DNA of 43,915 nucleotides from Octopus bimaculoides (lineage: Eukaryota): NCBI RefSeq assembly GCF_001194135.2, contig NC_069009.1, positions 11,593,849 through 11,637,763 of the forward strand. The letters are read 5' to 3'. Below the pieces are notes generated by a model. The model saw only the letters and a list, made by a program, of their open reading frames with translations, made no database searches and had not been told where the DNA came from. Of this stretch, positions 5,774-35,276 are shown piece after piece (positions within the stretch are counted from its first letter, which is position 1; every line of letters starts with the position of its first letter). The position numbers and the translations under genes were made by a program.

Positions 5774-5928
5774 GTGAATGAACGAAATACTGTTGGTCGC
5801 ACACCTCTACATGAGGCTTGTTACTCTGGATACACAGAAACAGTTCTTCTCTTATTGAATCACACTGGCATCGGTGTCAATATAGTGGACAATAATGGTG
5901 ATACACCTCTACATCTAGCAGTTATTAA
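5774..5928 (+). CDS. ANK-RING-Death gene, first visible internal exon (ankyrin repeats), phase 0-2
   Basis: ttttccag acceptor and gtaagt donor. Encodes [51 protein letters not shown](K), with two G-x-TPLH ankyrin motifs. Upstream exons are not visible. Confidence 0.95.
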
Positions 5929-6339
5929 GTAAGTCCCCAATGGATCTGGAATACCAAATCTGTTCTTTTTGTTGACAATAATGTTTGTTCCGTTTTCATT
6001 GAGTCATTCATGTTATAATGCCACCATGGGGTCATCGTCTTCCTTCTCTTGTCATTACATCACACTGTAATGACAATGCAATCTATTTCATTAATTAATC
6101 GTCACCATGTGTTTGCTGTTGTTGTTGTTGTTGTTGTTGTTGCTGCGGCTTAACTAGACTCATTACTTCATCTCATTCTCCATTACTTCAACGTTACAGG
6201 TTCAAACCATCTCTCTTCTTCTTTTCATTCCATGTAAACAATCTTCCTCTCTCTCACACACTCTCTCTTGCAATTGTCCTCTTTCCTCTGACTTTGGGAT
6301 AAATACAGAATCATCCTCCGACAAAATTTACATTTGTCT

Positions 6340-6625
6340 TTTTAAGTTCCAAGTTCAAATCCTGCCAGAGCACATATTACCATTGTGGGAATTAATATAA
6401 ATTGTACCAGTAATATCCAGGGGTCCATTTAATAAACTGTCCTCTCCTCTCTTGTTCTTGTGTCTTCTTTCTGTTGGACAAAATACGTAGTAGTATTTAT
6501 TTACGACCCGTTATGTTCTGAGTTCAAATCCTGCCAAGGTCGACTTGTCCCTCCATCTTTGCAAGTTTAATAAAATATAATACCAGTCATGGTGTGGGGT
6601 CCATATAATTAACTGAAGCCCTTCT
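6340..6625 (+). mobile_element. Two decayed SINE family B fragments
   Basis: GTTCAAATCCTGCC(A/C)AGG...GTACCAGT motifs at about 6352 and 6522 resemble the body of the copies at 7090 and 9445. Confidence 0.5.
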
Positions 6626-6747
6626 TTTCCGCCTAAATTTCATGTTTATATAAGTTGTTCATCGTACCATATATAGATATTTCTGTATTTTACTCAGGTG
6701 TGTATATATCATTGTTCTACTGTGTACAGTGTGTATTGACTAAATAA

Positions 6748-6784
6748 GTGTGTGTGTGTGTGTGTGTGTGTCTGTGTGTGTGTG

Positions 6785-6834
<50 letters not shown>

Positions 6835-6843
6835 CGTTTGTGT
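6748..6843. repeat. (TG)n microsatellite
   Basis: Directly visible. Confidence 0.95.
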
Positions 6844-6981
6844 AATAACTGTTGTAATTAGGTTACAGTGACCCAGTCACTTTTATTTTCTTTAATTAAT
6901 GACCTAACAATTATTAAGTGCTTCAATCTCTGTGATGTCTGTAGTTTTCATATTTTTCTTTCGTCTTTCCATAACTTTCAG

Positions 6982-7018
6982 GCAACATTATGATGTGGTG
7001 ACTTTGATGCTCTCCAAG
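6982..7018 (+). CDS. ANK-RING-Death gene, 37-nt exon, phase 2-0
   Basis: ctttcag acceptor and gttagt donor. G+CAACATTATGATGTGGTGACTTTGATGCTCTCCAAG = (K)QHYDVVTLMLSK. It completes the ankyrin helix and is exactly the phase bridge needed between the 5774 and 11116 exons. Confidence 0.9.
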
Positions 7019-7089
7019 GTTAGTTAAAACACATATTACATACAGTTTCTAGTATTTTATTGATCTGTTTAATATTTATATCATAAAAA

Positions 7090-7305
7090 GTCGGCGAGCT
7101 GGCAGAAACGTTAGCACGTTGGGCGAAACGCTTAGTGGTATTTCGTCTGCTTTTACGTTCTAAGTCCAAATTCCTCCGAGGTCGACATTGCCTTTATCCT
7201 TTTGGGGTGGATAAATTAAGTACCAGTTGCACACTGGAGTCGATCTAATCGACAGGCCCCCTCCTCCAAAAATTTCAGGCCTTGTGCCTGGAATAGAAAA
7301 GAATA
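7090..7305 (+). mobile_element. tRNA-derived SINE family B
   Basis: GGCGAGCTGGCAGAAACGTTAGCACG...GAGGTCGAC...AAGTACCAGTT. Homologous copies at 9445, 11944 (reverse) and 28647 (reverse). Confidence 0.85.
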
Positions 7306-7856
7306 TTTATATCATAAGGGTACCATTGAAATAATGGAGCTAGATTTAATCACCTGTATCACAAAACCCTTTAAATGGCCGGTGTTGAGTCTGTAGAGGA
7401 ACATTATGTTGATCATGCTGATAACGACGGTATTAGTGACAGTCCAACTGACCACCACCGCTGACAATAGTATCTTTAATGGTCAGATGAAACAAAGTCA
7501 ATATGAAATTACCCAAATATATCACATTCTCCCTCACTCCGTATAAACATATTATGCTACATTATAATAAATATCCAACATCAGCTGCATTATATTCTAC
7601 TACATTTTATTTCGTTAAATTATATTTTATTATTTTTCTCTTCACTCCATCATTCAGCTTTTCTTTTTATTTGACGTCTTCACTGATCAATTCTAGATAT
7701 TAAACACCCCATAACATAACGCTAACAACTTTAGCTGTCTGATAATAAATAAATGAAAATGGATTTAATAAACATATATGTTTGATTGTGAGTTTATGTA
7801 TGTACATGTATATTTCTGTGATTATACGCATATGTGTGTCTATGAGTATATACGTA

Positions 7857-7910
<54 letters not shown>

Positions 7911-8626
7911 AATGTATAAAAACATAAATATGAATATATACAGTTTATATATTGAAGAGTAAAGGTCTACATGTAAGTCTTTCGAGTTACATATCTTAAC
8001 GGTCAGATTTTTCAAACTCCTGTATAGTCTTGATCTAGAATATGACACAATCGCATCCATAGATTTCCTGAACTCTATCTATTACCAAACCAATGAAAAT
8101 AATTAATTTATAACGGTCGACTAATTATTTCTTTTTACTATCATGCTTACCCGTCATTTATTTTATTATATAATTCTTCCCCTGCATATTTAAGCATTGT
8201 TTTATTCCTTTTATTTAAATTTATATATTATATATTTTGCATACATTTATATTTTTATTCAGTAGCTAAATACATACGCATAATATATACGATCTAACTT
8301 CTTAAATTTATTAGTTATTCGTCTGCATCCTTTCGAGAATATGTTAATCTTTGTTGTATAAGCTCATAAAGCCCTGTTGAAATTCTGCCCCACATAGTTG
8401 AAAATGATTATCAATTCTTAGCATTTGACCCTACCCTTATGCTTAGAATTACGAATCCCCCTAGAGACATGAATCGCTACATATATGTAAGATTTTGGCA
8501 TCTACCATTTTTTAGACCTTTATAATCTATTAGCATTGTCTTTATAAAAAACTTTCAACCTCTTAATATCATACAAATAAATCATTTATACATCCATAAT
8601 TCTTCATAATTCTCTCTTCCATTATA

Positions 8627-8753
8627 CAGGGTGTCCACAAAGTCTGGGTACATGGGGATTAACGCATACTTTAAGAAATGATTATTCCTTATATTTAATT
8701 GTTTATGTTATGATTTTATTTACTCTATGTACCCAGATCTTGTGTACACCCTG
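8627..8753. mobile_element. 127-bp Tc1/mariner-type MITE with TA target-site duplication
   Basis: TA|CAGGGTGTCCACAAAGTCTGGGTACAT ... ATGTACCCAGATCTTGTGTACACCCTG|TA: roughly 27-bp imperfect TIRs with TA on both sides. Confidence 0.9.
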
Positions 8754-8788
<35 letters not shown>

Positions 8789-9063
8789 GTGTGTGTGTGT
8801 GTTTGTGTGTATGTATGTATGTAAATTTAGTAAATGGAGTAAAACGCATATTTTAACTGAATACTTTTATTTCCAACATATGTTTCGAAGATTACAAATT
8901 ATACCTTCCATAGGAATAGGTGATGTTGATAAGAATGTAATCTTCTCTTCAGGGAAATGCCTGGGAACCTGCTTAAACGTAAGACATTTTAACCGAACCA
9001 ATTTATTTTGTCCGAGTTAATTATTAACTAGGAGAAAATAAATACATATAATAATATATATAC

Positions 9064-9109
<46 letters not shown>

Positions 9110-9444
9110 GTATTACGATGAATATAAGCAAGCCAATATTTGCCTCAGAAGCGCTGAAATGTGTATTGTGAGGTACAAATATGGTTGATTTATTTTCAAA
9201 CGCTGAGAGAACAGCAGAGACAAGATAAAATATCAATACAAAGCGGAAATATATGCCAGCAACCAGCCATGAGTCTCGAATTCACATCCCTTTAATTACC
9301 GTTCAAGTTCATTACCAATTAAGCTAAACTGCCCACTGGCAAATTAACCTACAATTTTAGAACACTTATAAAGCTTTGAAAATAAATTATTACGTTATTT
9401 GTATTTCACAATAGACATTTGTATCTCATAATACACATTTCAGG

Positions 9445-9662
9445 AAGGCAGCGAGCTGGCAGAACTGTTAGCACGCTAGACGAAATGCTTAGCGGTATTT
9501 CACCCGTCGCTACATTCTGAGTTCAAATTGCGCCGAGATCAGCTTTACCTTTCATCCTTTCGGAGTCTATAAATTAAGTACCAGTTGAGTACTGGGTCGA
9601 TGTAATCGACTATCCCCTCCACCCAATTTCAGGCATTGTGCCTATAATAGAAAGGATTATAA
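9445..9662 (+). mobile_element. tRNA-derived SINE family B
   Basis: GCAGCGAGCTGGCAGAACTGTTAGCACG...GAGTTCAAATTGCGCCGAG (B-box-like)...AAGTACCAGTTG. Confidence 0.85.
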
Positions 9663-11115
9663 TACACATTTCAGCACTTTTAAGGTGAACATCGGTTTTG
9701 CTTACATTCATCATAATAAACAATTGCGACTTTGCAGCGTTCGGATCTTCTTTAAAACGGGGGCCACATTTTTCATTAACGAAACACTTTGAAACTTGGA
9801 ACACTGGTAGAATGTGTCATATAAAACATCTTTTTCTCTTAGTCTTCTTTNNNNNNNNNNNNNNNNNNNNNNNNNNNNNNNNNNNNNNNNNNNNNNNNNN
9901 NNNNNNNNNNNNNNNNNNNNNNNNNNNNNNNNNNNNNNNNNNNNNNNNNNNNNNNNNNNNNNNNNNNNNNNNNNNNNNNNNNNNNNNNNNNNNNNNNNNN
10001 NNNNNNNNNNNNNNNNNNNNNNNNNNNNNNNNNNNNNNNNNNNNNNNNNNNNNNNNNNNNNNNNNNNNNNNNNNNNNNNNNNNNNNNNNNNNNNNNNNNN
10101 NNNNNNNNNNNNNNNNNNNNNNNNNNNNNNNNNNNNNNNNNNNNNNNNNNNNNNNNNNNNNNNNNNNNNNNNNNNNNNNNNNNNNNNNNNNNNNNNNNNN
10201 NNNNNNNNNNNNNNNNNNNNNNNNNNNNNNNATGGAGATTAAATACGCTTTACATCGCTTAATCAGCCAAAGGAGTAAATATAAACAACTGAATACTTGT
10301 CAGTGATTGGTTGAAATTATCGAAATAAGACAATTTTTTACATGAAATAAATTCGAATACAAAAATATTTTTCTGTTCTATAACACAAAATAGATAAGTA
10401 TACGAAGTTTGAAAGTCTTTCGGTACCAAAAACACTACGTAAAACATTAATGAAAAATGTGGCCCCCGTTTTAGAAAAGATCCCAGCGTTCTGCTCGGTA
10501 GCTTTATAACTGCGGATTAATTTGTCAGTGGGTAGTTTAGCTTAATCGGAAAAACGCTTGACCGGTAGTCAAAGGGATCTGAGTTCGAGCCTTATGTCTG
10601 TTTGCTGACGTATTTTTCCGCTCTGTATGAATATTTTTTCTTATCTCTGCTGTTCTATCAGCGTTTGTGCGTTTGAGAATAAATTATTACCTTATTTGTA
10701 TCTCACAATACATATGTGTGTGAGTACATTAATTTTATAGATGTGGACACTAACTGCCTCAACAATTTTGTAAACCCTTTATTAATATAGTAATATCAAA
10801 GGCATCCATCACATATATAATTCCTCTTTACTAGATTCGATTTGCTATTCATGAGTTCACTCTTGTTCATTTCCCTTATAACTTACTATAGTCAGGAATA
10901 AAGGTAGATTAAGCTGAAACGATCTGTTTACGACATCTTAATTTCAATTATCATGTCACTACCACGTAACCATAGCAAGTTATAGAGTGACCTTACAAAG
11001 GCTGACTTCATTGACAAACATCACTTATACGTGGTCAGTTTGATCAATCACCCAGTAGAAGGCTCTTATGACACATTGCTATCCACCCTAATTTTCTATT
11101 TTTACTCCCACAAAG

Positions 11116-11325
11116 GTTTCAGTGAAATTGAATAGCAAGAACCATAAGAAAATGACACCATTGCTTGAAGCCGTCTCCGAGGCCCACCTCGGAATAATAA
11201 AGAAATTAATTTCACGTGGAGCAGGCATAAATGTTGTCGACAATGACGGCAATAATTGTCTGCACCTTGCTGTGAAGAAAAAGAGTTTTCATTCTGAGGA
11301 GGAATATATTCCCATTTTAGACGAG
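11116..11325 (+). CDS. ANK-RING-Death gene, 210-nt ankyrin exon, phase 0-0
   Basis: Overlaps track ORF 11122..11337. caaag acceptor (inferred from phase) and GAG|gtaagt donor. Encodes VSVKLNSKNHKKMTPLLEAVSEAHLGIIKKLISRGAGINVVDNDGNNCLHLAVKKKSFHSEEEYIPILDE. Confidence 0.92.
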
Positions 11326-11373
11326 GTAAGTTTTTAAATTTCTTTGTGAATGTGTGTGCTTGTGCGTGTGTAC

Positions 11374-11417
<44 letters not shown>

Positions 11418-11943: not shown

Positions 11944-12161
11944 AATATTCTTTTGTACTCTAGACACAAGGCCCGAAATTTTGGGGGGAGGCGCCAGTCG
12001 ATTAGATCAACCCAGTACGCAACTGGTACTTAATTTATCTACCCCGAAAGGATGAAAGGCGAAGTCGACCTCGGCGGAATGGGAACTCAGAACATAAGGA
12101 CAGACGAAACACCGCTAAGCCTTTTGCCCCGGGGTACTAATGTTTCTGCCAGCTCGCCGCC
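11944..12161 (-). mobile_element. SINE family B, antisense
   Basis: ...AACTGGTACTTAATTT...GTCGACCTCGGCGG...TTCTGCCAGCTCGCCGCC is the reverse complement of the 7090 and 9445 copies. Confidence 0.85.
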
Positions 12162-12599: not shown

Positions 12600-12637
<38 letters not shown>

Positions 12638-12819
12638 ATACATATATATGAATTTGTGTATGTATGAGAGAGAAAGAGAGAAATAGAGAAACTGGCAGAC
12701 ATTCACTCTCATCAACCTTTCTTCTTTTAGTGTTAAGTAATCCATGCTCTCCCTCTGTTTCACTTTTTCTTCTTCCCTTCTGGCTCCTCTCAGCTTCTGT
12801 TCACTCATAATATTAAAAG

Positions 12820-14005
12820 TTTATATACGTTGATCCCAAATAATGAAGGACTTCTCGCGCTTAAACTCACCCTAGACCTTCAGCCTAACCCTCAACCTGA
12901 TACTCCCACACTTCATCTGGCCGAACTTGTTATTTCTCTCAACGGCTTATTGTTCGTGGGTGAGTTCCACTTACAGGTCTACAGAGTGGTCATGGGAACG
13001 AAAATGGGCCTCAATTATGCGAATCTGTTCTCCCAATTCACTGGTCCCAATCCTGAAATATACGGTTGTTATATCAATGACTGTATCGGCGTGATCTCAC
13101 TTTCCTTCGAACAACTGGACTCCTTCCGTTCCTTTATCCAATTCTTCCATCCTGTCTTTGAATTCTCCTGCACTGTCTTTAACTCTTCCGTTGGATTACT
13201 CGACATTTCTGCGAGCATACACCGCCCCGCTCTTACTACCTCCATCCACTACAAACACACTGACTCATACACCTACCTTAACTTTTGCTCCTCCAACCCT
13301 ACCCACTCCATCCCCTACTCTCACTTCCTCCGGCTACGCAGGCTCTGCTGTGACAACCATGATGTTTTAGATTCACTCTCAACTTGTGGTTCACCATTTC
13401 ATTCTATGTGGATTCCCCCTCACCACTATCCACACTGCCGTTGCCCGAGCCTTTGCTCGGACACGATCTGCAGACCGTGCCTCTGCTCTTTCCCCTCGCA
13501 CCAGCTCCACCCTTACCCATCTCTCGTTGTGTGTGTATGATACACGCACATACACATCTGCACACACCAACTGCTACACACAACACACACACATACATTA
13601 CACACGCACACACACAGGCACGTCAGATTCCACCTTCGTTCACACATAAACATATACACATTCACACAAACCATTCTTATTTAAACACATATGCTTAAGC
13701 ACTTTAGCTCGTTGGGATCACCATTATTTTCTCCCTTTCATTCAACTTCTTTTCATCATTATCCCCCTTTCATTCAACCTCTCTTTTTTTCCACTCATTC
13801 ACCATATCGGACCGCTCAACTCTACACAGTTTTTCTCTCTCCGTTTTTTTTTTTTTCATTCTCTTTTTATTATATCCTCTTATTCCTTTCTGTTGAAGAG
13901 CGTAGGCTCGAAACATAAAAGACTTCCATTTTTTCCCGAGCGTCAAACTAATACACCTGCGTGTTGCTCTTACACCTATCTTCGTTTTTTACTTTTTCTA
14001 TAAAT
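12820..14005 (+). mobile_element. Penelope-like element (PLE) reverse-transcriptase fragment and 3' terminus, degenerate
   Basis: ORF 12830..13540 contains VVMGTKMGLNYANLF, YINDCIGV (YIDD-like), LLDIS, YKHTDSYTYL and SIPYSHFLRLRRLC, motifs typical of PLE reverse transcriptases. A hammerhead-like motif lies at 13881-13953. Confidence 0.8.
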
Positions 14006-16425: not shown

Positions 16426-16426
<1 letters not shown>

Positions 16427-16504
<78 letters not shown>

Positions 16505-18333: not shown

Positions 18334-18509
18334 TGCTGCACTGAGCTCAAACGAAGCAAAGATAATAGGCTCTCTGGTGTGGTGGTTGCTTGCTATCTAG
18401 CCCGCCAGGGTGCCGACTTTTACCATAAAAATAACAAGAATAACACACCATTGGACCTCATTGAAAATCGAGCTTTGAAAGAAAAATTAAAAGCATGTTT
18501 ACTATCACG
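18334..18509 (+). CDS. ANK-RING-Death gene, last ankyrin exon (Mind bomb-like), phase 0-2
   Basis: catttgtag acceptor and CG|gtaaat donor. Open frame CCTELKRSKDNRLSGVVVACYLARQGADFYHKNNKNNTPLDLIENRALKEKLKACLLS(R). VACYLARQGADFYHKNNKNNTPLDL resembles the final Mind bomb ankyrin repeat ([25 protein letters not shown], from memory). Confidence 0.92.
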
Positions 18510-21549: not shown

Positions 21550-21686
21550 GTGTATGCTTTGTGAAGTAAATGAGGCCACTGTGGAGTTACAACCCTGTGC
21601 ACATAATGCGGTATGTGGAGAGTGCTACACAATTAAACTTAGAAGATGCCCCAAATGCAAAACATGTATAAGCCCAAGAGTTTTTG
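21550..21686 (+). CDS. ANK-RING-Death gene, RING-HC (C3HC4) exon, phase 2-1
   Basis: cttctgcag acceptor and G|gtaagg donor. Encodes (R)CMLCEVNEATVELQPCAHNAVCGECYTIKLRRCPKCKTCISPRVF, i.e. C-x2-C-x11-C-x-H-x3-C-x2-C-x7-C-x2-C with all eight ligands present. Confidence 0.95.
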
Positions 21687-22046: not shown

Positions 22047-22268
22047 GTTTCAGTTATTGGACTCCGGCCATGCTGGAGCACCGTCTTTAGTCGAAGAAAT
22101 CGACTCCAGAACTTATTCTTTGTAAACCTAGTACTTTAGTACTTGTTCTATAGGTATCTTATGCCGAGCTGCCAAGTTACGGGGACGTAAACATACCAAC
22201 ATTGGCTGTCAAGCGATGACTGGGGGACAAACACAGACACACAAACACACACACATATATATATATAT
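22047..22268 (-). mobile_element. SINE family A, 3' half, antisense
   Basis: GTTTCAGTTATTGGACTCCGGCCATGCTGGAGC...AAGTTACGGGGACGTAAAC matches 2950-3140. Confidence 0.85.
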
Positions 22269-23160
22269 CTAGTTGATTTCTATAAATTTTACCTTCATCT
22301 GAGCCATCTTGTTTGTCAGAATGACTGAAAACACGTTCCATACCTAAATTCGAATTGAATCGTTTAGCTGTAAAGTAATTCTGTTAAAGATATCAATATA
22401 ACTGAAATTTCATAAATTATCCACTGAGGTTAGCACAGATGGTAAAATGGATAAAACAGAAGACAATAGATTTAATATTCCATTTTTTGGAACAGGTGAG
22501 TTAATGAAAATTTTTGGCTAGTTATATATAATTTTAGTAAGTTTACAGAGAGGTTATTGTTATTGCTGTTGTTATTCAGTTAAATGTCTCTCATAATCTG
22601 GTAGAATTACGATGAAATGTGTTCTATGAGTGAATTCCGTCGTATTTCTCTGATAGTAAATCTATCATTACATCCACGAGACAACGGTTGTTTCTCTTTC
22701 TTTTCAAGGTAGATACTGGCTGTAAGATACAATACAATCAATGATATCGCCCTCATCATTTATCAGCTGATTTTCACGTTCCCATGGACAGGCTTGATAG
22801 TCACTTAGTCAGTTCTTATTCATAGTTACTGCCCCCTTGATTGGTTGAGGAACACAGCTAAAGTATTCCAGCTTTTCAATGGTGATATGCCCTTCCCAAC
22901 ACCAACCACTTTCTAAAGTGTCCTGGGTAAATTTTATCGTGGCACAGGTATTAGAAAGATTGTCCTCTGCATAAAAAGATTAAACGTTCCTCTCAAACTT
23001 ATAGTACCACTAGAGAAAGTCGAAAAATGTTGTCCGAAACGGTTGTGATCACTAATTGACCACTGATGATTAGAATGTCTCTCACTGATAAAATACAGAT
23101 AATTTGTAAAGATAAAAGATTATTAGTTTAAAGTGTAAAATTCGGAAATGTTTATTTCAG

Positions 23161-23211
23161 ACTGTCCAAAATTGTCCGACAAGGGTGTCCAGACGGTGGC
23201 AGAGTCAGTTA
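23161..23211 (+). CDS. Candidate 51-nt symmetric mini-exon E1 (phase 1-1), paralog of the first Death-domain exon
   Basis: tttatttcag acceptor and A|gtgagt donor; open frame (D)CPKLSDKGVQTVAESV. Flanks are homologous to those of 32478-32549. No transcript evidence available. Confidence 0.65.
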
Positions 23212-24393
23212 GTGAGTATAAAATAACTGTACCTAATTTATTTCTATAAAGTTTACCTTTACTTGAGCTATTTTGTTTGTCAGAATGATGGAGAGTAGGT
23301 TCCATTCCTAATTTTTGGCTGATAGGGAAGTTGTAAAGTAATTTTATTACAGATATCAATATTACTCATATTTCATAAACTATCCACTGAGGTTTGTTGT
23401 AATATGTTTCACTTGTTAGGGTATATACCCAAAATGCCTCAGGTCAGAACATATATATATATATATATATATATATCTTCGTTACAATATCATAAATCAG
23501 GAGAAGAGCATAGCCTATAAAATATAGAGCAGTTATTTATTGTACACATTTTCGGAAATTTTTACTTCTAAATTGCAAGACCTAGCTATCAAGTGAAGGA
23601 AGACAACTCGCCCGACCCTAATTTTTTAAGAGGAATATTTCTTGAATTATCTCCCCCGTTCTTGTGTTTAAAAAAACATTCTTTGCAGAGTACGGTTATT
23701 GTTTAAAGAAACTGAAGAGATGTCTAGTTCTAGTTCACGCTNNNNNNNNNNNNNNNNNNNNNNNNNNNNNNNNNNNNNNNNNNNNNNNNNNNNNNNNNNN
23801 NNNNNNNNNNNNNNNNNNNNNNNNNNNNNNNNNNNNNNNNNNNNNNNNNNNNNNNNNNNNNNNNNNNNNNNNNNNNNNNNNNNNNNNNNNNNNNNNNNNN
23901 NNNNNNNNNNNNNNNNNNNNNNNNNNNNNNNNNNNNNNNNNNNNNNNNNNNNNNNNNNNNNNNNNNNNNNNNNNNNNNNNNNNNNNNNNNNNNNNNNNNN
24001 NNNNNNNNNNNNNNNNNNNNNNNNNNNNNNNNNNNNNNNNNNNNNNNNNNNNNNNNNNNNNNNNNNNNNNNNNNNNNNNNNNNNNNNNNNNNNNNNNNNN
24101 NNNNNNNNNNNNNNNNNNNNNNNNNNNNNNNNNNNNNNNNNNNNNNNNNNNNNNNNNNNNNNNNNNNNNNNNNNNNNNNNNNNNNNNATATATATATATA
24201 TATATATATACGTATAGGTATATATACATAATTAGGGTCCAGCAAAAATTGCTTCACCACGTACCGAAATTTAGAAAATAGCAGTTAAATACTATTCCAC
24301 TACCATATATCTCCCAGACAGCAGCACTCGCAACTCACACAGGCAAAAAGGAAACAATAACGAATCCACCCGGCTTTCATTAACTGTATACGC

Positions 24394-24542: not shown

Positions 24543-27500
24543 ACCTATATTGTGAATAATGGTGGTAATGAAACTGAAGCCAATGACGGTGACAGTGTTG
24601 CACCCGGTAGTCTCAGAGATTCTGGCCCGGCTCCAGCCTGTCGATACCCAGAAAGGGACCACCACACACGGCGTAGATGGAGCAAGCAAATTAATGCTGT
24701 GGTCATGGAATGTTATTACCTGGGCAACCCGGTAGATGAAAATGGTGCTCAAATTAGGAGTTACCGACAACGTATGATCATTGGAGAGAAAAGGGATTGT
24801 TTCAACTCACGGAACAGAGACTATGTGATCAAGCTAGAGCAATAAGAAAAATTTGTTGATTCACAGAAGTAGTGCTCAAAGTTATCAAAAGACGGGTCAT
24901 GGAAAATAGCAGCAGAGATAAGAAGGAAAATACAGTTCTTACTAATAAGAGTAATCTCATAGCACAGGAAAGAAGCAGTGGTAGCTTACTTGATGAGAGA
25001 TATATAGATCATCTAAGAGAAGACGTTAAGACTAATAGCGACATAACAGATGAGCAAAAGGCAATCTACGACAGAATAAAGGTGACACTACAAGAGAACG
25101 ATAGCGACATTATTTGTAACCTTAAAAAGGTTGATCAATGGAAATTGAACCAAGAAACGGAAAGTGTGAATGAAATTCTGAAGTACATCAGAACAAACAT
25201 CACAGAAACAAATAATTTGATTAAGGCAGCAGGTATTGTTGTAGCAGAAAATGTGGGTGTCGATGTCAAGAAAAAGAAACATACTGGGATTGACAAAAGA
25301 AAAGATCCATGGTGGAAAAGAAGAATCCAGGGAGGGTTAGACATGCTCTCGAAGGAAATTTCTGTGTTAGACCAAAAGCAAAAGGGGAGCTTAAAAGTGA
25401 ACAAAAATACAGATTACTGAAAAGGAAGTATAACATTGAAAGAAAGGGCCTGAAAATATTAGTGGAGGAACTGAAACAGTGCCTCGTTGCAAAGAAAGGA
25501 AAGACGGTAAGATACGACCAAAGAATGAAGGGTGGGTTACTACTAGAAATGGTTATTCAGATTAGATCAGAAGAGATTCTATAAAGAAATAGATGAAGGA
25601 TGTACAGATGAAAAGTTGATACCAGATAACATTGAAAGTCAAAGGTTTTGGAGTGACAGCTGGAGCAAAGGCAAGGAGTACAAGAAGGATGCTGAATGGT
25701 TACAAGAACTGAAACAAACAGTAGTCTGTCCAAAGCAGAAAGAACTAGTCATTTCAGTTAGGGAAGTGAAGGAAGTCGGCAAAACAAAATTAACAACTAG
25801 AAGGCCCCGGGACCAGATGGAGTTCAAGGCTACTGGATCAAAAGATTTGGTGAATGTCATGCATGAATAGCTGCGCAGCTAAACACCTTGTTAAATGCCG
25901 ACCAAGCAACACCAGAATGGTTGACATTGTGTTGGACAGGGCTGTGCTTGAAAAAGATCGAAAAAGGCAAACGGTAGACAATTACTGGCTGATATCTTGT
26001 TTGCCGCTTATGTGGAAATTATTGATTGGAATACTCTCAGAGTCAATGTATGAACATCTAGAAAAAAATGGAGTCCTGCCACATGAACAGAAGGGCTGCA
26101 AGTGTAAGTGCAGAGGTACCAAGGATCAACTCCCGATAGATAAAACTGTACTCAGAGACTGCAAGAGGAGGAAAAGTAACTTAGCCATATCATGGATCCT
26201 AAGGCGTACGATATGATTCCACATTCTTGGATTATGGAGTGTATGAACCAGTTTGGGACTGCATCGAATGTTGAGCGAATGCTTGGAAAAAGTATGGCAA
26301 ATTGGAGGACGGACCTGACAGCATATGGAAGTAGTTTAAGGACAGTAGAAATTAGGAGGGGCATCTTCCAAGGAGACTGCCTGTCCCCACTGATCTTTGT
26401 ACTGTGCTTGCTACCACTGACACTGATTCTGAGGAAAGCAAAAGCTGGGTATGTATTCAAAAGCCGCTAATAAAAAGTCAACCATTTGCTATTAATGGAT
26501 GATCTCAAACTTTATGGTAAAGATGAAGCCCAAGTCAGTTCCCTCGTTGATACGGTGTATATCTTCAGTGCTGATATCAGAATGGAGTGCGTGGAGGTTA
26601 TGAAGCAGATTGAAGAGACGGGCTATAAGTACTTGGGGATTTTGGAAATGGATAAATTAATGGAGAAAGAAATGACAGAAGAATTTAAGGTGAGTACTTA
26701 CGCAGACCGAGACTGATCCTAAAGTCGAAATTAAACGGAAGGAATAAGATCGAAGCTATCAACACCTGGGCGGTTTCAATCCTTAGATATGGAGCAGGGG
26801 TAATCGCATAGACAGGAGACGAACTAAACAGCTTAGACAGAAAGACAAGGAAGTTGCTAACTAGATATGGGCCACTCCACCCAAAAAGTGATACAGACTG
26901 ACTGTATGTACCAAGAAAAATAGGGGTAAGAGGGCTTATTGGATGCGAACACAGCATTAGAGCAGAAGAAAACAACATAGCATGGTATGTAAAAATGCCA
27001 CAGAACCGCAATTATTAGAAGTAGGAAGGTCAGGCTTGTGTAGGATGAAAGAAATTGAAAACGAATGAAACTGAAAATAAGTGGATAAAGAAAAGAATGC
27101 ATGGTCAATTTTATAGGGACGTTGAAGATAAGACAGACAGAAAAAAGATGGCTGTGGATCACTAAGAGTGATTTAATACCGGAAACGGAGGCCCTAATCT
27201 TTGCTGCCCAAGTGCAAGCACTAAGAACAAACTACATAAACTACAGAATAGACGACACATCAGAAAGTGATAAGTGCAGAATCTATGGACAAAATGGTGA
27301 AACCGTATGGCATATTACCAGCCAATGTACACCACTATCTCAGAAGGAATATAAGAGACGCCACGACAATATAGCCAGGCTTGGTCCATTGGACATTTTG
27401 CAACAAGTATGGACTTGATAGAGCAAAAAATTGGTACGACCACAAACCTGAAGGCATTGTCGAAAATAGAAATGCAAAACTCCTATTGGATTTTATGATT

Positions 27501-27922
27501 CAGTACGACCATGAGATTGAGAATAGGAAGCCAGACACAGTCTTAATTGAGAAAGAAAGCAAACTATGCTGGATCATAGCTATAGCATGCCGAGCTGACA
27601 GCAAGGTATGCGATAAGGAAGAAAGAAAAGTCGAGAGATATGACAGGTTAGCTTGGTAAGTTAAGCACTTGTGGTCGATGAAAAAGGTGGTAGTAGGACC
27701 AATATACTGGGAAATACTGGGAACAGTGAGCAAAAATCTCGAGAAGTACGTGGAACAAATAGGAGTTGCAATAAGGGTGGAGCACTTTCAGAAAACAGCA
27801 CTGCTTGGGACCGCTCGAATACTCCGGAAGGTGATCGAAAAATAAGATGTGTTACCTTAGTTCACTGGTAGTGAACAGCTGACACTGTAGTACATCTCCA
27901 GCGTTAGAAGCTGTGCAAAGGC
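24543..27922 (+). mobile_element. Near full-length, inactivated R4/Dong-clade (RLE) non-LTR retrotransposon
   Basis: Frameshifted ORF pieces in the expected order: [85 protein letters not shown] (RT), YKYLGILE, TEALIFAAQ, CRIYG..ETVWHITSQC (zinc knuckle) and NRKPDTVLIEK (restriction-like endonuclease). Confidence 0.85.
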
Positions 27923-28030
27923 AAGAAGAAGAAGAAGAAGAAGAAGAAGAAGAAGAAGAAGAAGAAGAAGAAGAAGAAGAAGAAGAAGAAGAAGAAGAAG
28001 AAGAAGAAGAAGAAGAAGAAGAAGAAGAAG
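27923..28030 (+). repeat. (AAG)36 pure microsatellite at the LINE 3' end
   Basis: Directly visible; 108 bp. Confidence 0.95.
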
Positions 28031-28646
28031 ATCGAAAAATACCTTAGGAATAAGAACCTGGGTTCGAAATTTCCCCAAGACACCTGGCTGGGGGGTATAT
28101 CAACCGAAACGTTGTGTTAACAACAAATATTAGGTTGAATATCCGTCAAATGTAAATAATGTAAATAATGAACATACTGATAAAGTGCGATGTGAGCAGT
28201 TAAAATCAAAGATTACCAGCAACAACGTTTGACAAACAGAGCAGTTGTATGTTTATCCTACGTGAAGCGGCATGTCACGATCTTGTGCTTAGATCTTTGA
28301 GGGCCAATTGGTCGACATTGGAATTAAACAGAAGAAGAGGAGATATTGGCTGGTGAACTTTAAAGGTGAGAAGACAATGAGATGTCATAGATTTGGCACA
28401 GATATAAGAAAAAAAAACAACTCAATTAACATTAAAACTGTTGTAAAGGGATAATTAGATGAGGTAATTGCTACACTGTTAGATATATGGGACATCTTAA
28501 TATAGAGATGAGATTGAGGAAGATCAATCAATTTTGTTGTAGCCCTAAATATTAGGCATCAGACCATTTTTCAAAGTATAAAGATATTGACCAAAACCAT
28601 AGTGATCACTGATTGACCATTAATGACAGGAATGTCTCACAATAAT

Positions 28647-28866
28647 TATTTCTTTATTGCCCACAGGGGGCTAAACATAAAGGGGACAAACAAAGAGATT
28701 AAATCGATTACATCGACTCCAGTGCGTAACTGGTACTTATTTAATCGATCCTGGAAGGATGAAAGGCAAAGTCGACCTCGGTGGAATTTGAACTCAGAAT
28801 GTAACGGCAGACGAAATATCGCTAAGCATTTCACCCGGCGTGCCAACGATTCTGCCAGCTCACCGC
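28647..28866 (-). mobile_element. SINE family B variant, antisense, with apparent AATAAT target-site duplication
   Basis: Reverse-complement match to the family B head and body, with a different tail. AATAAT at 28641-28646 and 28867-28872. It interrupts sequence that is continuous in the paralogous unit near 32390. Confidence 0.85.
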
Positions 28867-28943
28867 AATAATGAAATATAAATTATTGATATAGATAAAG
28901 AAATTTTACTGTAAAGAATAAAACTTGGGAATATTTATTTTAG

Positions 28944-28994
28944 AGAATCCAAACTTTGAAGAGAAACAAAGGGAGACGATGGCAAAGAGAGTTG
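28944..28994 (+). CDS. Candidate 51-nt symmetric mini-exon E2 (phase 1-1), paralog of the first Death-domain exon
   Basis: tttattttag acceptor and G|gtgagt donor; open frame (K/E)NPNFEEKQRETMAKRV. The upstream flank is homologous to 32000-32477. Confidence 0.65.
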
Positions 28995-29001
28995 GTGAGT
29001 A

Positions 29002-29036
29002 TAACCCTAACCCTAACCCTAACCCTAACCCTAACC
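29002..29036. repeat. Interstitial telomeric-type repeat (TAACCC)x5.8
   Basis: Five perfect TAACCC units plus TAACC, equivalent to TTAGGG on the minus strand. Confidence 0.9.
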
Positions 29037-29039
29037 TCA

Positions 29040-29170
29040 TGTCTATTTTGCCATGGTTTCTATGGGTGAATACCCTCCCTAATGCCAACAACTTCAAAGT
29101 GGGACGTGTTTACTGGGTGCTTTTATGTGGCATCAGCAGCAGTGAGGTCACCAAGTATCTTGCAACGCAA
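29040..29170 (-). mobile_element. Family C / RTE-tail fragment, antisense
   Basis: CCCTCCCTAATGCCAACAACTT...TACTGGGTGCTTTTATGTGGC matches 17280-17330. Confidence 0.55.
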
Positions 29171-30861
29171 GGCCCTTCACCTGAGGGGTGGAGTAGCATT
29201 AAGGGGCAGAAAAAGTAGTTTTGCATTAGAGTGGAAACATGGCTGCCTTATGTGGGAAAAGAGAGATGATGGTGAAATATGATGGTGAGTGCTGCAGAGG
29301 TGGAGTGTGGGTGGGTTTATGAGATTGCGAAAGGTGAGTGGTAGATGATGGTGGGAATGTAATGAGTGGACACCACGTGGCAGGAGCAGGTTTGGGCGGT
29401 GTCCTTCGGGGACGACATTCAGTGCAGCCATTATATGTGCAAGTAGGTACATGAGAGACAATGAGATTGCAGAATNNNNNNNNNNNNNNNNNNNNNNNNN
29501 NNNNNNNNNNNNNNNNNNNNNNNNNNNNNNNNNNNNNNNNNNNNNNNNNNNNNNNNNNNNNNNNNNNNNNNNNNNNNNNNNNNNNGGGGGGGGGCATGAT
29601 GGATTGTAGAGGAGCATTGTTGGGGAACAGGCATGAGCTTGATTTTATTTTGGTGGGTGGGCCTTCTCAAGCACAGCAAACTGTCAATTGTCTGTTAGGT
29701 TCAACATCTGAGGTTCATTTCTGATGAGGGATCACAAACGTTGGATGATGCACAGGTGAGGTTTGATAGCAATATGCTATATTCTCGAGAACCAGTTCTT
29801 TTGTTCCATTTCAGATATTTTCACTGTAATAACGCGTGGGTGAATATGTATATGTTGTTAATGAGGATCTGTGCAGGTGTAAATTGTTTGAGGATGCTTG
29901 AATCACTTTCTGCTCCACTTGTGTAGATTTAATCTTTGCTCAAAAAAGTTGCTTTATTAAGGAGGATATGAGATTCAAATGTCTTCAAATATTTCCTTAA
30001 TCAGATGATATTCTGATGAACTTTGATGAGGGAAGTTAGAATTAATGATAGCCAGCAGTAACATTTAACAAAGAGAGCAGGTGTATGTTTATCCTAGGCG
30101 AAGTAGTGTGTGATGTGTTTGTCGCTATATCTTTGATGACTAACCTGGATGACACTGGAATTAAGCAGAAGAGGAGAAGAATGTTGGCTAATGGAAGTCT
30201 ATAGGTGAGAGGAGAATGCTAAAGAGTTGGCAAAGGTATCAGAAAGAAAAGATAGAACTGTGATAAAAACAGTTTTATCAAGTGATAATTAAATAAGAAA
30301 ATTAAAGCAGTGTTAGATCATTTGTCTTAATAGAGAGAGGTGATTTAGGACAGCTAGTCTGTTTTGTTGTGGACCTACATATTAGGTAATTGCATATTAG
30401 GTAAAATAGCATCACCTAATTGACTTCTGCAAATTTTCAGTTTACCCGAGCCATTTTGATTGTGAGAATGACTGAGAACTGGTTACGTTCCTAATTTCCA
30501 ATTGAAAGATTAGCTGTAAATAATTGGATTAAAAACGTTACTGAAACTTCCTGAAATCGAGTTTGGTATGGTTAGTAAAATTCATAAATTAGAATACACA
30601 AGAGAGTTAATGCTGTTTTGGGGGGACGGAGAACTAAAATATGATGTTAAATGTAAACAGGTGAGTTAATGAGGAAGATCTTGTTTCTTTTTCTACTAAG
30701 GTCTTTACTAAGTTTTCCGATAGATTATTGTTGTTGTTATGTAACCAGATGTCTGTCATGATATGTTGTCTCTTGTTTGGGTGTGTACCCAGAATGTCTC
30801 AGGTTAGAATATATAGGATTGTTATAAATTAAAAGAATTAAACATGAACTCTTTATAAATA

Positions 30862-31657
30862 CAGTGTGTCGACAAAGTCTGGGTACATGGGGATTTACAC
30901 ATACTTTAAGAAATTATTTCTTCTTATATTTAATTGTTTATGTTATGATTTTATTTACTCCATGTACCCACATGGGGATTAACACATACTTTAAGAAATT
31001 ATTATTTCTTATATTTAATTGTTTATGTTATGATTTTATTTACTCCATGTACCCACATGGGGATTAACACATACTTTAAGAAATTATTATTNNNNNNNNN
31101 NNNNNNNNNNNNNNNNNNNNNNNNNNNNNNNNNNNNNNNNNNNNNNNNNNNNNNNNNNNNNNNNNNNNNNNNNNNNNNNNNNNNNNNNNNNNNNNNNNNN
31201 NNNNNNNNNNNNNNNNNNNNNNNNNNNNNNNNNNNNNNNNNNNNNNNNNNNNNNNNNNNNNNNNNNNNNNNNNNNNNNNNNNNNNNNNNNNNNNNNNNNN
31301 NNNNNNNNNNNNNNNNNNNNNNNNNNNNNNNNNNNNNNNNNNNNNNNNNNNNNNNNNNNNNNNNNNNNNNNNNNNNNNNNNNNNNNNNNNNNNNNNNNNN
31401 NNNNNNNNNNNNNNNNNNNNNNNNNNATTTAATTGTTTATGTTATGATTTTATTTACTCCATGTACCCACATGGGGATTAACACATACTTTAAGAAATTA
31501 TTATTCCTTATATTTAATTGTTTATGTTATGATTTTATTTACTCCATGTACCCACATGGGGATTAACACATACTTTAAGAAATTATTATTCCTTATATTT
31601 AATTGTTTATGTTATGATTTTATTTACTCCTGGTACCCAGACTTTGTGGACACCCTG
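30862..31657. mobile_element. Same MITE family as 8627-8753, with its interior expanded into an 85-bp tandem array
   Basis: TA|CAGTGTGTCGACAAAGTCTGGGTACATGG at the left end and ...GGTACCCAGACTTTGTGGACACCCTG|TA at the right end. The 85-bp period is measured at 31441, 31526 and 31611. Gap at 31092-31427. Confidence 0.9.
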
Positions 31658-32477
31658 TATATGTATAATGATCATTAAACTATATTTAATGTTAAACTTA
31701 ATATTGGACTCTGGACATGTCTTTACATTTAAATAAAGTATTGGTGTTAACATAAAATATAAAGATAGGAATAAAATATGAGTTCCCAGTGTGACTTGAA
31801 AAACACAACACCTTGTTATTAACAATATGTAAAATACACTTACTCCATTTAGATAATATTTACGATCCATAAGAGCATTCTTATATTCACACTTGTTAGT
31901 TTTTATATTATATCAATGCTAATAGAGGCACAGCTTTCTGAGTCTGTCATCTTTTGGTTTTAATTCTGACTTAACAGAGAGAGAAGGTATTATGTTTATC
32001 TTGCTTGAAGTTGTCTGTTAAGTGTTTGTGGCTAGATCTTTGATGTGGCTAGATCTTTGATGTGGCTAGATCTTTGGTTGACATTGGAATTAATTAGGTG
32101 AAAGAATGTTGGTTAGTGAAGTCCACAGGCGAGAGGACAATGACATGTCATAGATTTGGCACAGATATAAGAAAGAAAAGCTAGAACTATGAGAAAAACA
32201 GTCTCATCAAATGATAATGAAATGAAATAATCGCAAGCTTATGTAGGATGTCTTAATACAATGACGAGGTTTGGGTAGGTTTATCTATAAATGTGAACCT
32301 AAATATTGAACTATTACATGGAACCATGATGGAAAGTATAAAAATGTTGGCCAAAACCATAGTGGTCACCAGTTGACCATTGGTGATAAGAATGTCTCAC
32401 TATGTTAAACTACAGATTATTTGTAGATATAAAGGAATTTTACAGTAAATTATAAACTTTGGAAACATTTATTTCAG

Positions 32478-32549
32478 GGAGTCAAAAGCTGAAGGAGAAG
32501 GATCTCCTGAGAGTGGCTAAGAGGTTAGGAAGCAATTGGTGGCAAGTAG
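32478..32549 (+). CDS. ANK-RING-Death gene, first Death-domain exon E3 (72 nt, phase 1-1)
   Basis: tttatttcag acceptor and G|gtgagt donor. Encodes (G)SQKLKEKDLLRVAKRLGSNWWQV(G), matching the Death-domain L..vA..LG..W..lg..LG pattern that continues into the last exon. Confidence 0.9.
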
Positions 32550-33019
32550 GTGAGTATAAAATTACAGTACCTAACTGAATTCTATAAATTTTACCTTCAC
32601 CTGAGCTATCTTTTTTTATTTTGTGAGAATGAATGAGAACAAGTTACATTCTTAAGTTCCTATTTAAAGGCTAGCAGTAGAAAAATTCTATGACAAATAT
32701 TCTTGAAATTTCATAAAATATTCGCTGAGGTTTTTATGGTTGGTAATAATGGACAAACTAGAAAACACAAATAGCATTTAATATTGCCTTGTGGACGAAG
32801 GAACTAAAATATGTTGTTTAAGGGTAAACAGGTGAGTTAACGACAAAGTTTTGGTTTGTTTTACATTTTCACTGAGTCTGCTGTTAGTTTATTGTAATTA
32901 AAGAAATGTACCAAAGTTAAATTCCATGACAAAGCATCTTTATTCCAATATAAGGCCTTGAGATTCCAGTTATATTGCCATATTGGAATAACTTTACCAC
33001 TGAGGCAAGTGAAATCGAA

Positions 33020-33930
33020 ATCAAGTTAAATTGGACACTAAACTCCACTTGCGAAGACTTATTGGTGCAAGCGAAAGCGAATTTGTGATGGCACCTGTGC
33101 CCAGAATCGCCTTTCTGGCACTTGTGCCCGCGGCATGTCTAAGGACTTTCGAGCGAGATCGTTGCCAGTGCCCCTGGACTGGCTCTTGTGCGGGTGGCAC
33201 ATAAAATACACCATTCTGAGCGTAGCCGTTGCCAGTACTGCCGGACTGGCCTTCATGCCGATGGCATGTAAAAGGACCCACTACACTCTCTGAGTGGTTG
33301 GCGTTTAGGAAGGGCATCCAGCTGTAGATACTCTGTCAAATGCCGTGCGTGAGAAAGCCCAGCAAGCCAAGTGAGATCTAAATCTAAGGCCTCAGCCAGT
33401 CCACTTAGGCGGACCTTCCTTCATTGGACACNNNNNNNNNNNNNNNNNNNNNNNNNNNNNNNNNNNNNNNNNNNNNNNNNNNNNNNNNNNNNNNNNNNNN
33501 NNNNNNNNNNNNNNNNNNNNNNNNNNNNNNNNNNNNNNNNNNNNNNNNNNNNNNNNNNNNNNNNNNNNNNNNNNNNNNNNNNNNNGCCTTTCTGGCACTT
33601 GTGCCCGCGGCATGTCTAAGGACTTTCGAGCGAGATCGTTGCCAGTGCCCCTGGACTGGTTCTTGTGCGGGTGGCACATAAAATACACCATTTTGAGCGT
33701 GGCCGTTGCCAGTACCGCCTGACTGGCCTTCGTGCGGGTGACACGTAAAAGCACCCACTACACTCTCTGAGTGGTTGGCGTTAGGAAGGGCATCCAGCCG
33801 TAGAAACTCTGCCAAATCAGATTGGAGCCTGGTGTAGCCTTCTGGTTTCACCAGTCCTCAGTCAAATCGTCCAACCCATGCTAACATGGAAAGCGGACGG
33901 TAAACGACAATGATGATGATGATGATGACA
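33020..33930 (+). mobile_element. Two tandem family C retro-element copies ending in (GAT)n
   Basis: 33106-33330 and 33586-33810 are similar but not identical. The second ends CATGGAAAGCGGACGGTAAACGACAATGATGATGATG. Confidence 0.8.
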
Positions 33931-35088
33931 TACGCCTGCAGACGCTTCAATAGAAACAGACTTAATAGCGCTCACACAACCAAATCATATCATATTCTCC
34001 CCATCAGTAAAGAGAGAATTTTTCTCTAAAGGAATTTACCAGAAAATGAATATTCACAAGTCAAACCAAACTGGAGGTGACCTCTCTGGCTGAGACTGAC
34101 ATAATAATAACTGAATAGGCTCAAAAGAATTTGATCAAATATGGAGTCCATTGGGGAATGGTCAGAAGAGTTATTTGGAGAGGATTCAACTGGGATTAAA
34201 TTTGACTCAGACTTATCGGCTGTTGCACTACCACTGATCCTTCAATTTTTGGTGTTATGTTGGGAACTTTGCAAGGTGACAGAGTGCACAGAGAGACATT
34301 ATTTAATAACCTTTTGATTATCAGATCTGAAGTCTGTCAGATTAAGACAGATATACAGGATTCCTCTAAAGGGTCTCTGGAGTAATGTTACTCAATAGGA
34401 TGTATAGTTCCAAGATCAGGGAGTCTCTGCAGGTTGAGCCTCTTCTTCTCCAAATCTCTGGTACTACAAACGTGATCAGAATGCCACGGGAATGAATTAC
34501 AAGACTGGTTCTTCAAGTCAAACCAACGGAGCAGGAAACTTAAGGATAGGCCAAGAATGAAATGGTTGGATGATATCCATGGTCTCAGTTGTTCATGCCT
34601 GGGAATCCAACCAAAATGTCATATGANNNNNNNNNNNNNNNNNNNNNNNNNNNNNNNNNNNNNNNNNNNNCCTATGGAGGAGGTGCCTGAGGACTCTACC
34701 CCAACAAACTTCCCAAGAATATTGCACGAAGAAAGTTGGATGGATGGATCATCAAATGGGTTGACTGCTGGGGGTCTCTGTTGATTCTTTAGGTTCTGAT
34801 GCACTTTTGCTTTCAAACACTTCTGACATTTGTTTGCCATAAATTTTCTCAAGTATAATTTCCAATTAATTTTCTTCAAAATCTTTTCTTTTAATTCAAT
34901 CTTTGTTGTATTTTCTTTAGAAATAGAAAACAATGTCTTATATTTTTCATGTTTCTTAGCTCTATTTTTTAAAAATTTCTTTATTGAAATAGTTTCTTTG
35001 TTATATTTATAACATCCTAGAGCACACATCTTTTATATTATTGTTAATGTTGTTGCAGTTATATTTCTTATTATTGTATCTTTTGCAG

Positions 35089-35276
35089 GCATTTTTTTAG
35101 GCATTCAAGCTACTGAACTGAAAATTGATGATGACTCGAATGACACTGCAAGACGGGGTTTCCTGATGTTATATGAATGGTTTAAAGGTTGTGATCCAGG
35201 TACACGAAATCTCGAAACACTAAGGGCAGCTCTTGAAGAAGCCGAGTGTTCCACTGCACTGCAATATTTATCATAA
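35089..35276 (+). CDS. ANK-RING-Death gene, terminal coding exon (rest of the Death domain and stop)
   Basis: cttttgcag acceptor, phase 1. Encodes (G)IFLGIQATELKIDDDSNDTARRGFLMLYEWFKGCDPGTRNLETLRAALEEAECSTALQYLS, then TAA at 35274-35276. ML..W and TL..AL are Death-fold motifs. Confidence 0.92.

Follow-up and report, generated by a model that had tools for sequence, protein, structure and literature searches.

We know of no RING between the ankyrin repeats and the Death domain in ankyrins, DAPK1 or NF-kB p100/p105. Related combinations have been described. Oyster IAPs of the BIRC11 type (BIR-DD-RING) join a death-fold to a RING (PMC8917759), and mammalian MIB2, a Mind bomb protein, both binds RIPK1, a kinase with a Death domain, and ubiquitylates it, acting in TNF complex I (PMC7815719); thus a link between Mind bomb and death domains already exists in trans. 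We have analyzed a window of 43.9 kb (43,915 nucleotides) from Octopus bimaculoides (RefSeq assembly GCF_001194135.2, contig NC_069009.1, positions 11,593,849 to 11,637,763, forward strand), window here meaning that whole stretch of DNA. Except for a first coding exon just upstream, it holds one intact protein-coding gene that carries such modules in a single polypeptide: about seven ankyrin repeats, the last interrupted as in Mind bomb, one RING of the Mind bomb/IAP type, a disordered linker and a C-terminal Death domain. Proteins of this family are already present in RefSeq and UniProt under misleading names; the ankyrin-RING-Death order in a protein of Mind bomb descent seems to be both new and confined to one lineage.

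The gene and its protein

The window is identical at every base to CM046629.1 of GCA_001194135.2, with matching runs of N, and a window position equals the L001 position minus 11360. Its G+C content is 37%, it contains 15 runs of N, and simple repeats are abundant. A protein search identified the gene model at this locus as RefSeq XP_014768682.2, a protein of 424 amino acids named "E3 ubiquitin-protein ligase MIB2 isoform X1". This protein is labelled P0001 below, and residue numbers follow it. Residues 67-424 map by tblastn, without mismatch, onto the following exons of the window.

5774..5928, plus strand: coding exon, ankyrin repeats, residues 67-118, phase 0-2; AG acceptor and GTAAGT donor; 100% match to P0001; Pfam Ank match
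6982..7018, plus strand: 37-nucleotide coding exon (K-QHYDVVTLMLSK), phase 2-0, which finishes one ankyrin repeat; P0001 residues 117-132 by tblastn
11116..11325, plus strand: coding exon, ankyrin repeats, residues 131-200, phase 0-0; P0001 match; both flanking introns equal introns of abalone MIB1
18334..18509, plus strand: coding exon, interrupted, atypical last ankyrin repeat (…LSGVVVACYLARQGADFYHKNNKNNTPLDL…), phase 0-2; P0001 match; best PDB match MIB1 8v0e, residues 341-384
21550..21686, plus strand: RING coding exon, a single C3HC4 RING of zf-C3HC4_3 type, phase 2-1; Pfam 24-25 bits; eight zinc ligands
23161..23211, plus strand: linker mini-exon 1, 51 nucleotides (DCPKLSDKGVQTVAESV), phase 1-1; in all three of the three RefSeq isoforms
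28944..28994, plus strand: linker mini-exon 2, a 51-nucleotide cassette (KNPNFEEKQRETMAKRV), phase 1-1; used by isoforms X1 and X3 but not by X2
32478..32549, plus strand: Death domain exon 1, 72 nucleotides (SQKLKEKDLLRVAKRLGSNWWQV), phase 1-1; same boundaries and phases in the octopus gene P0231
35089..35276, plus strand: Death domain exon 2, phase 1-stop, TAA at 35274-35276; P0001 match, family profile, AlphaFold and Foldseek

An earlier note on this DNA, made from its letters alone, had joined seven exons with phases 0-2, 2-0, 0-0, 0-2, 2-1, 1-1 and 1-stop. All seven have a canonical AG acceptor and GT donor on the plus strand and match the RefSeq model exactly. The chain stands as far as it went, but it missed the two 51-nucleotide mini-exons. 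The model also has a first coding exon (residues 1-66) outside the window, 1153-1359 bp before its first base and beyond an assembly gap. Among the RefSeq isoforms, X2 lacks mini-exon 2, X3 has an alternative 5' exon and none skips mini-exon 1. Together the two mini-exons contribute 34 residues of linker, and the frame is unchanged when both are skipped.

Two other exon assignments were considered and rejected. A direct join of 5928 to 11123 is out of frame; the frame is restored when the 37-nucleotide exon (6982-7018) is taken in and the next exon starts at 11116. The open, exon-like stretch at 20627-20751 on the plus strand (ADLEELKKLMQEKK… / ADLEELKKLMQEKKDAPFEKQ…) has unsuitable phases, no Pfam match and no place in any gene model, and the donor at 18509 joins the acceptor at 21550 directly.

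The nine runs of N between 5774 and 35276 are all intronic, and none comes nearer to an exon than 114 bp. P0001 has all its residues outside the assembly gaps, and paralogues from separately built assemblies are collinear with it and show no extra conserved segment. At most, the gaps could hide more copies of the variable linker mini-exon.

The ankyrin repeats of P0001 are unambiguous (Pfam Ank_2, 3.7e-34; Ank, 1.8e-29). They are tandem repeats of 33 residues, and the AlphaFold predicted local distance difference score (pLDDT) exceeds 90 across most of residues 30-250. The RING (CMLC…PCAH…VCGEC…CPKC) scores 23.9-24.6 bits against Pfam zf-C3HC4_3, for which the cut-off is 27, and has eight of eight zinc ligands in C3HC4 spacing; zf-C3HC4_3 is matched in 70 of 85 relatives, the best paralogue reaching 1.8e-15. 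Of 69 paralogues, no fewer than 68 keep any given one of the seven Cys ligands; at the His position 56 have His and 11 have Asp. Sequence identity between P0001 and its paralogues is only about 45-65%, and the near invariance of the zinc ligands despite this divergence argues for selection on a folded RING. Just before the second RING Cys, 67 of the 69 have a hydrophobic residue (L, F, W or Y); this residue belongs to the E2 contacts of related RINGs.

By itself, the Death region of P0001 falls under the Pfam Death cut-off (13.3 bits, E = 0.095), and of the 85 relatives 18 reach E < 1e-3 against Pfam Death. A profile built from the C-termini of 17 paralogues matches RIPK1 (1.4e-11), ankyrin-G (4e-11), PIDD (2.7e-10) and ankyrin-B (2e-8) in the PDB, as well as the Death domains of Fas, FADD, CRADD, TRADD and TNFR1. 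The AlphaFold2 model of the region has a pLDDT of 85.8 and a predicted template modelling score of 0.79, and the best 28 Foldseek matches of this model in the PDB are all death domains (TM 0.6-0.8, probability 0.91-1.00). The family profile and the predicted fold thus identify the C-terminal region as a Death domain, as the earlier note had claimed; it is of the RIPK1/PIDD/ankyrin type. In the full-length AlphaFold model the ankyrin, RING and Death modules are folded, while the linker at 303-339 (about 37 residues), the product of the mini-exons, has a pLDDT below 50. Searches with the whole protein are of less use: PDB sequence matches of P0001 are dominated by designed ankyrin proteins, and Foldseek with the full-length model gives generic ankyrin matches, with MIB1 at rank 13 only, and is not discriminating.

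Mind bomb ancestry and the Death module

Descent of the ankyrin-RING part from Mind bomb is supported by collinear alignment and by shared introns. By BLASTP, P0001 is collinear with the MIB2-like protein P0084 at 2e-29 and with MIB1 of the abalone Haliotis asinina at 4e-29, in both cases from the regular ankyrin repeats through the interrupted last one to RING1; its identity to MIB is only 25%. P0084 has ankyrin repeats and two RINGs, and its cluster includes a bird protein; it was the sole match from outside Octopus and metagenomes in the protein search with P0001, and is taken to be the C-terminus of a MIB2. In the PDB, the stretch that spans the last ankyrin repeat and the RING matches the terminal MIB1 ankyrin repeat (8v0e, residues 341-384) and IAP RINGs, cIAP being the best among the RINGs. 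The family RING profile scores 29-46 bits against MIB RING1/2, 3-9 bits against the last MIB RING and 42 bits against the RINGs of cIAP1/2.

Gene structure was compared with that of the Haliotis asinina MIB1 gene (L005), with the following result for the four octopus introns.

Octopus intron 130/131, phase 0: abalone MIB1 671/672, phase 0; exact
Octopus intron 200/201, phase 0: abalone MIB1 743/744, phase 0; exact
Octopus intron before the RING, phase 2: abalone MIB1 803+2, phase 2; same phase, two codons away, beside an alignment gap
Octopus intron after the RING, phase 1: abalone MIB1 875/876, phase 0; same site, nine residues past the last Cys, one nucleotide off

Homology with Mind bomb extends no further than the intron following RING1. 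The N-terminal part of Mind bomb is also absent: a Pfam scan found PF06701, PF00569 and PF18346 (MIB/HERC2, ZZ and the Mind bomb SH3 repeats) in none of the 85 relatives, while true MIB1 proteins carry all three. The N-terminus of P0001 may be incomplete, yet paralogues of up to 653 amino acids have only ankyrin repeats upstream. MIB1 itself is highly conserved, and proteins from vertebrates to sponges all match one MIB1 query at E <= 1e-117; octopus MIB1 was not among the best 120 matches to that query.

The Death domain is encoded by a 72-nucleotide exon of phase 1-1 and a terminal exon of phase 1-stop, with the intron after WWQV. A two-exon Death module identical in layout, with phase-1 introns at the same two sites, is found in a Death-only octopus gene, P0231 (L006, O. 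bimaculoides CM046626.1:18973313-18982577). RefSeq names this protein "RIPK1"; it has no kinase, its N-terminus is disordered, and the Argonauta hians protein P0127 is related to it. Two further candidates for Death-only donors, P0103 and P0097, were rejected as truncated models of the ankyrin-RING-Death architecture. Models that look Death-only begin in linker mini-exons and take their start codon from an intron tract, and so are truncated copies.

Within the intron region between RING and Death domain, Death exon 1 and its flanking intron form a unit of which the window holds four tandem copies in the region 22266-32862, together with one additional relic.

22266..22479: flank relic of the Death exon 1 unit, additional to the four copies
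23015..23395, plus strand: copy of the unit, holds mini-exon 1; 68% identity over 395 bp, E = 3e-42, to the Death exon 1 unit
28174..29004, plus strand: copy of the unit, holds mini-exon 2, split upstream by a short repeat insert
30010..30691, plus strand: non-coding relic of the unit in which the flanks remain and the exon is deleted
31971..32862, plus strand: the unit with the true exon

These tandem copies indicate that the linker mini-exons are decayed duplicates of Death exon 1. The number of linker units per paralogue varies from none to about three. Phase-1 exon shuffling is backed both by the tandem exon 1 units and by the recurrence of the phase 1-1/1-stop Death module in the otherwise unrelated P0231.

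The earlier note had read the last ankyrin repeat and the RING as Mind bomb-like and had proposed that the C-terminal RINGs were replaced by a Death domain. The alignments and the two exactly shared introns bear out the former; the latter agrees with the end of homology after RING1 and with a family RING that resembles RING1/2 and not the last RING. Its further proposal of phase-1 exon shuffling is supported in part: the Death module fits it, given P0231, but at the breakpoint the abalone MIB1 intron is of phase 0.

These results can be arranged in a sequence of events. The gene descends from the part of a Mind bomb gene that encodes the C-terminal half, after loss of the substrate-binding domains at the N-terminus and of the last, catalytic RING or RINGs. 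A two-exon phase-1 Death module, of the kind also present in the octopus Death-only adaptor gene, would have been joined at the intron after RING1, and the first Death exon would then have been tandemly duplicated, its copies decaying to linker mini-exons.

Several other repeats were observed in the window. A dispersed repeat of about 220 bp, with 78-83% identity between copies, lies at 7088-7307, 9445-9660, 11944-12161 (minus strand) and 28704-28866 (minus strand), and one copy interrupts the second Death exon 1 unit. Further repeat families occur at 115-414, 2940-3253 and 22030-22271. Long intronic open reading frames at 24500-27850, 12737-13537 and 15165-16281 (plus strand) look like decayed retrotransposon copies; their only Pfam match is at 26180-26467, to the RVT_1 reverse transcriptase (28 bits). 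Beyond the gene, at 39052-42100, some 3 kb of purine-rich, tandem low-complexity sequence (translated FLSFFLS… / KERKKE…) surround a gap at 40284-40606 and give a spurious minus-strand open reading frame of 975 codons. An Rfam scan of the window gave zero matches.

A family of Octopus paralogues

A protein search with P0001 returned 83 clusters at 90% identity, of which 11 are from O. bimaculoides, about 47 from O. sinensis and 25 from O. vulgaris. The last ankyrin repeat, RING and Death domain occur in that order in about 50 of the 85 relatives, and 20 of the 85 are modelled as ankyrin-RING proteins without a Death domain. An exhaustive HMMER search of 1.84 billion representatives with a RING-to-Death profile gave 2511 matches. 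Among the best 150 of these, all proteins with both RING and Death domain are from O. bimaculoides, O. sinensis and O. vulgaris; the remainder are multi-Death proteins or Mind bomb proteins, the ranks of the latter being inflated by their tandem RINGs. A word-indexed profile search gave 58 matches, all from Octopus. The gene thus belongs to a large family of fast-diverging paralogues found so far only in Octopus, a statement of range that refers to the best 150 of the 2511 HMMER matches and to collections in which the share of squid, cuttlefish and Nautilus proteomes is not established.

P0001 has its nearest relatives within O. bimaculoides, paralogues at 59-67% identity that include one on the same chromosome; its best match in O. 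sinensis or O. vulgaris does not exceed 54%, although another family member has an orthologue there at 83%. This pattern points to birth-and-death evolution. Family members are concentrated on CM046629.1 of O. bimaculoides (12.0 Mb; at least four) and on a 12.0-Mb record of O. vulgaris (about 20), which suggests that a conserved small chromosome is a hot-spot for the family. One O. vulgaris protein of 278 amino acids, P0074, contains a RING, a partial Death domain, LRR repeats and a second partial Death domain, and is probably a chimeric or mis-joined annotation.

RefSeq names given to family members include MIB2, MIB1-like, ankyrin-1 and PSMD10, among others. In consequence, dozens of octopus entries in RefSeq and UniProt (MIB1, MIB2, ankyrin-1, PSMD10, PP6 regulatory subunit, RIPK1) are members or fragments of this family and not orthologues of the genes whose names they bear. 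Full-text literature searches found no paper describing the ankyrin-RING-Death architecture. The earlier note had anticipated both a lineage-specific protein and a little-characterised family annotated as 'MIB2-like'; the range, the names and the absence of MIB/HERC2 and ZZ from all 85 relatives agree with it.

Function and comparison with known systems

The anatomy of the protein, its Mind bomb ancestry, the conservation of the RING ligands and the Death fold are established by these data, while its function is inferred. As the earlier note had suggested, the family probably links death-domain signalling to ubiquitination, either as a ligase or as a non-catalytic adaptor recruited by its Death domain. 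In the mechanism we favour, the Death domain would dock the protein into homotypic death-domain assemblies of receptors or adaptors, clustering would unite the RINGs and activate E2-dependent ubiquitination, and the variable ankyrin surface would select the substrate. We consider the whole of this account, comprising one intact gene, Mind bomb origin, fusion to a Death module, an Octopus-only family and a ligase recruited through its Death domain, to be probable, with considerable room for error in the combination.

Several points weigh against it. Mutation of RING1 in human MIB2 leaves ubiquitylation of cFLIP intact, and it is the last RING that is essential (PMC7815719). Since the RING kept in the octopus protein is of the RING1 type, which MIB2 does not need for that reaction, ligase activity is not assured. 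RINGs of the IAP/MIB type usually dimerise through a C-terminal tail, and the RING of P0001 is internal, not C-terminal. By sequence alone the family RING matches cIAP1/2 as well as it does MIB RING1/2; the RING by itself cannot separate the two origins, so that the argument for ancestry rests on collinearity and gene structure. The intron after RING1 is of phase 0 in abalone MIB1 and of phase 1 in the octopus gene, and hence either there has been a shift of the donor site or abalone MIB1 differs from the real parent, octopus MIB1 or MIB2. P0001 starts within an ankyrin repeat, at a Met whose codon comes from a pyrimidine tract, and in longer paralogues the protein extends 80-100 residues further at this end, so that the N-terminus of the gene model is probably incomplete. 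Finally, the exon joins are predictions that draw on gene models and on conservation across paralogues.

Because the last RING and not RING1 is essential in MIB2, the main rival is that the same gene, of the same origin, encodes a non-catalytic adaptor or decoy. Its RING would be a structural or binding module, and the protein would cap, scaffold or compete in death-domain assemblies or tether ankyrin partners there. Such a role would suit an internal RING of the dispensable type that lacks a C-terminal dimerisation tail, as well as the 13 of 69 paralogues in which Asp or Gln takes the place of the His ligand, the variable residue (R, G, Q, L…) following the last Cys, and the existence of models with only ankyrin repeats and RING or only RING and Death domain. 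It is harder to reconcile with the near-complete retention of the seven Cys ligands and of a hydrophobic residue at the E2-contact position, and with the 42 bits that the RINGs of cIAPs, which are active ligases, reach against the family profile. We regard this adaptor as a serious possibility, although a rather unlikely one.

A second rival holds that two adjacent genes, one ankyrin-RING and one Death, have been fused by gene prediction, the ankyrin-RING transcript ending shortly past the RING exon. Readthrough of the donor of that exon does meet a stop after five codons (FGKDTF, then stop), an intron of about 11 kb, rich in repeats, separates it from Death exon 1, and the 20 relatives modelled without a Death domain would fit a separate ankyrin-RING gene. 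However, about 50 models, drawn from three species and produced by several annotation efforts, show the same succession of RING, linker and Death domain; the phases all agree, and each of the three RefSeq isoforms connects both parts. The models that resemble a separate Death gene are truncated copies of the full architecture, and nothing like the first exon of such a gene was seen upstream of 32478. We consider a fusion by annotation very unlikely.

That P0001 is a plain octopus MIB2 orthologue acting in Notch-ligand endocytosis, as the RefSeq name and the real similarity to the ankyrin-RING1 region of MIB1/MIB2 might suggest, is refuted by the domain tests and is given practically no weight, since no family member has MIB/HERC2, ZZ or Mind bomb SH3 repeats, the two or three RINGs are reduced to one, which is not of the last-RING type, a Death domain occurs in no Mind bomb protein, paralogues number dozens per genome, and identity to MIB is only 25% where MIB1s from vertebrates to sponges all match a single MIB1 query at E <= 1e-117.

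An adhesion G protein-coupled receptor encoded on another O. bimaculoides chromosome (P0114/P0222) has LRR repeats, a GPS motif, 7tm_2 and a C-terminal Death domain of the family type (102 bits against the family profile), and is a possible upstream partner of the ankyrin-RING-Death proteins. In a more far-reaching proposal, which we consider doubtful, the family would form an intracellular recognition-response set peculiar to octopuses: dozens of ankyrin-RING-Death ligases with fast-diverging ankyrin surfaces, recruited through the matching Death domains of octopus-specific receptors, P0114/P0222 for instance, and of the adaptor P0231. By analogy, such a set would resemble the TRIM proteins of vertebrates or the expanded IAPs of bivalves, and, if real, it would be an unrecognised arm of immune or stress signalling in cephalopods.

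To our knowledge, innate-immune gene expansions have hardly been reported in cephalopods, and the family is a candidate cephalopod link of death-domain signalling (cell death, NF-kB-type immunity) to ubiquitination. Cephalopods are reported to have few or no TRADD-N proteins, death-fold-associated immune adaptors that are expanded in sessile marine invertebrates (PMC8195603), so that expansion of a Death-domain family in octopus is mildly unexpected. Under the account we favour, the gene is also a case of exon shuffling in which a developmental ligase was cut at an intron, fused to a mobile Death module and multiplied in one lineage, with the parent, the breakpoint intron and a candidate donor-type module all identifiable. 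The octopus fusion parallels the mammalian pairing of MIB2 and RIPK1 as separate proteins and may help to dissect that interaction.

Of the known systems, MIB1/MIB2 share with the octopus protein a collinear ankyrin block, an interrupted last repeat (…ACYLAxxGAD…PLDL…) with a zf-C3HC4_3 RING after it, two introns of the same position and phase, and a third of the same phase. Unlike them, the octopus family lacks the N-terminal substrate-binding region (MIB/HERC2-ZZ-MIB/HERC2 and SH3 repeats), has one RING of the RING1/2 type where MIB has two or three, including the catalytic last one, and ends in a Death domain. It is also multi-copy and lineage-restricted, whereas Mind bomb is conserved and single-copy.

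The cIAPs (cIAP1/cIAP2; BIR-UBA-CARD-RING) have the same RING subtype, and they and the oyster IAPs resemble the octopus family in combining death-fold and RING in one polypeptide and in lineage-specific expansion in molluscs. The octopus proteins differ in having no BIR, in an N-terminal binding module made of ankyrin repeats, in the order RING then Death instead of death-fold then C-terminal RING, and in having a Death domain proper, not a CARD, as their death-fold. Ankyrins, DAPK1 and NF-kB p100/p105 likewise have ankyrin repeats and a C-terminal Death domain, those of ankyrin-G and ankyrin-B being among the best PDB matches; in contrast to these proteins, the octopus family has a Mind bomb-like ankyrin block and no ZU5-UPA, kinase or Rel-homology parts. 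RIPK1, which heads the PDB matches of the family Death profile, is a kinase. P0231 shares the Death module of two exons and both of its phase-1 intron sites, but has neither kinase, ankyrin repeats nor RING, and its N-terminus is disordered.

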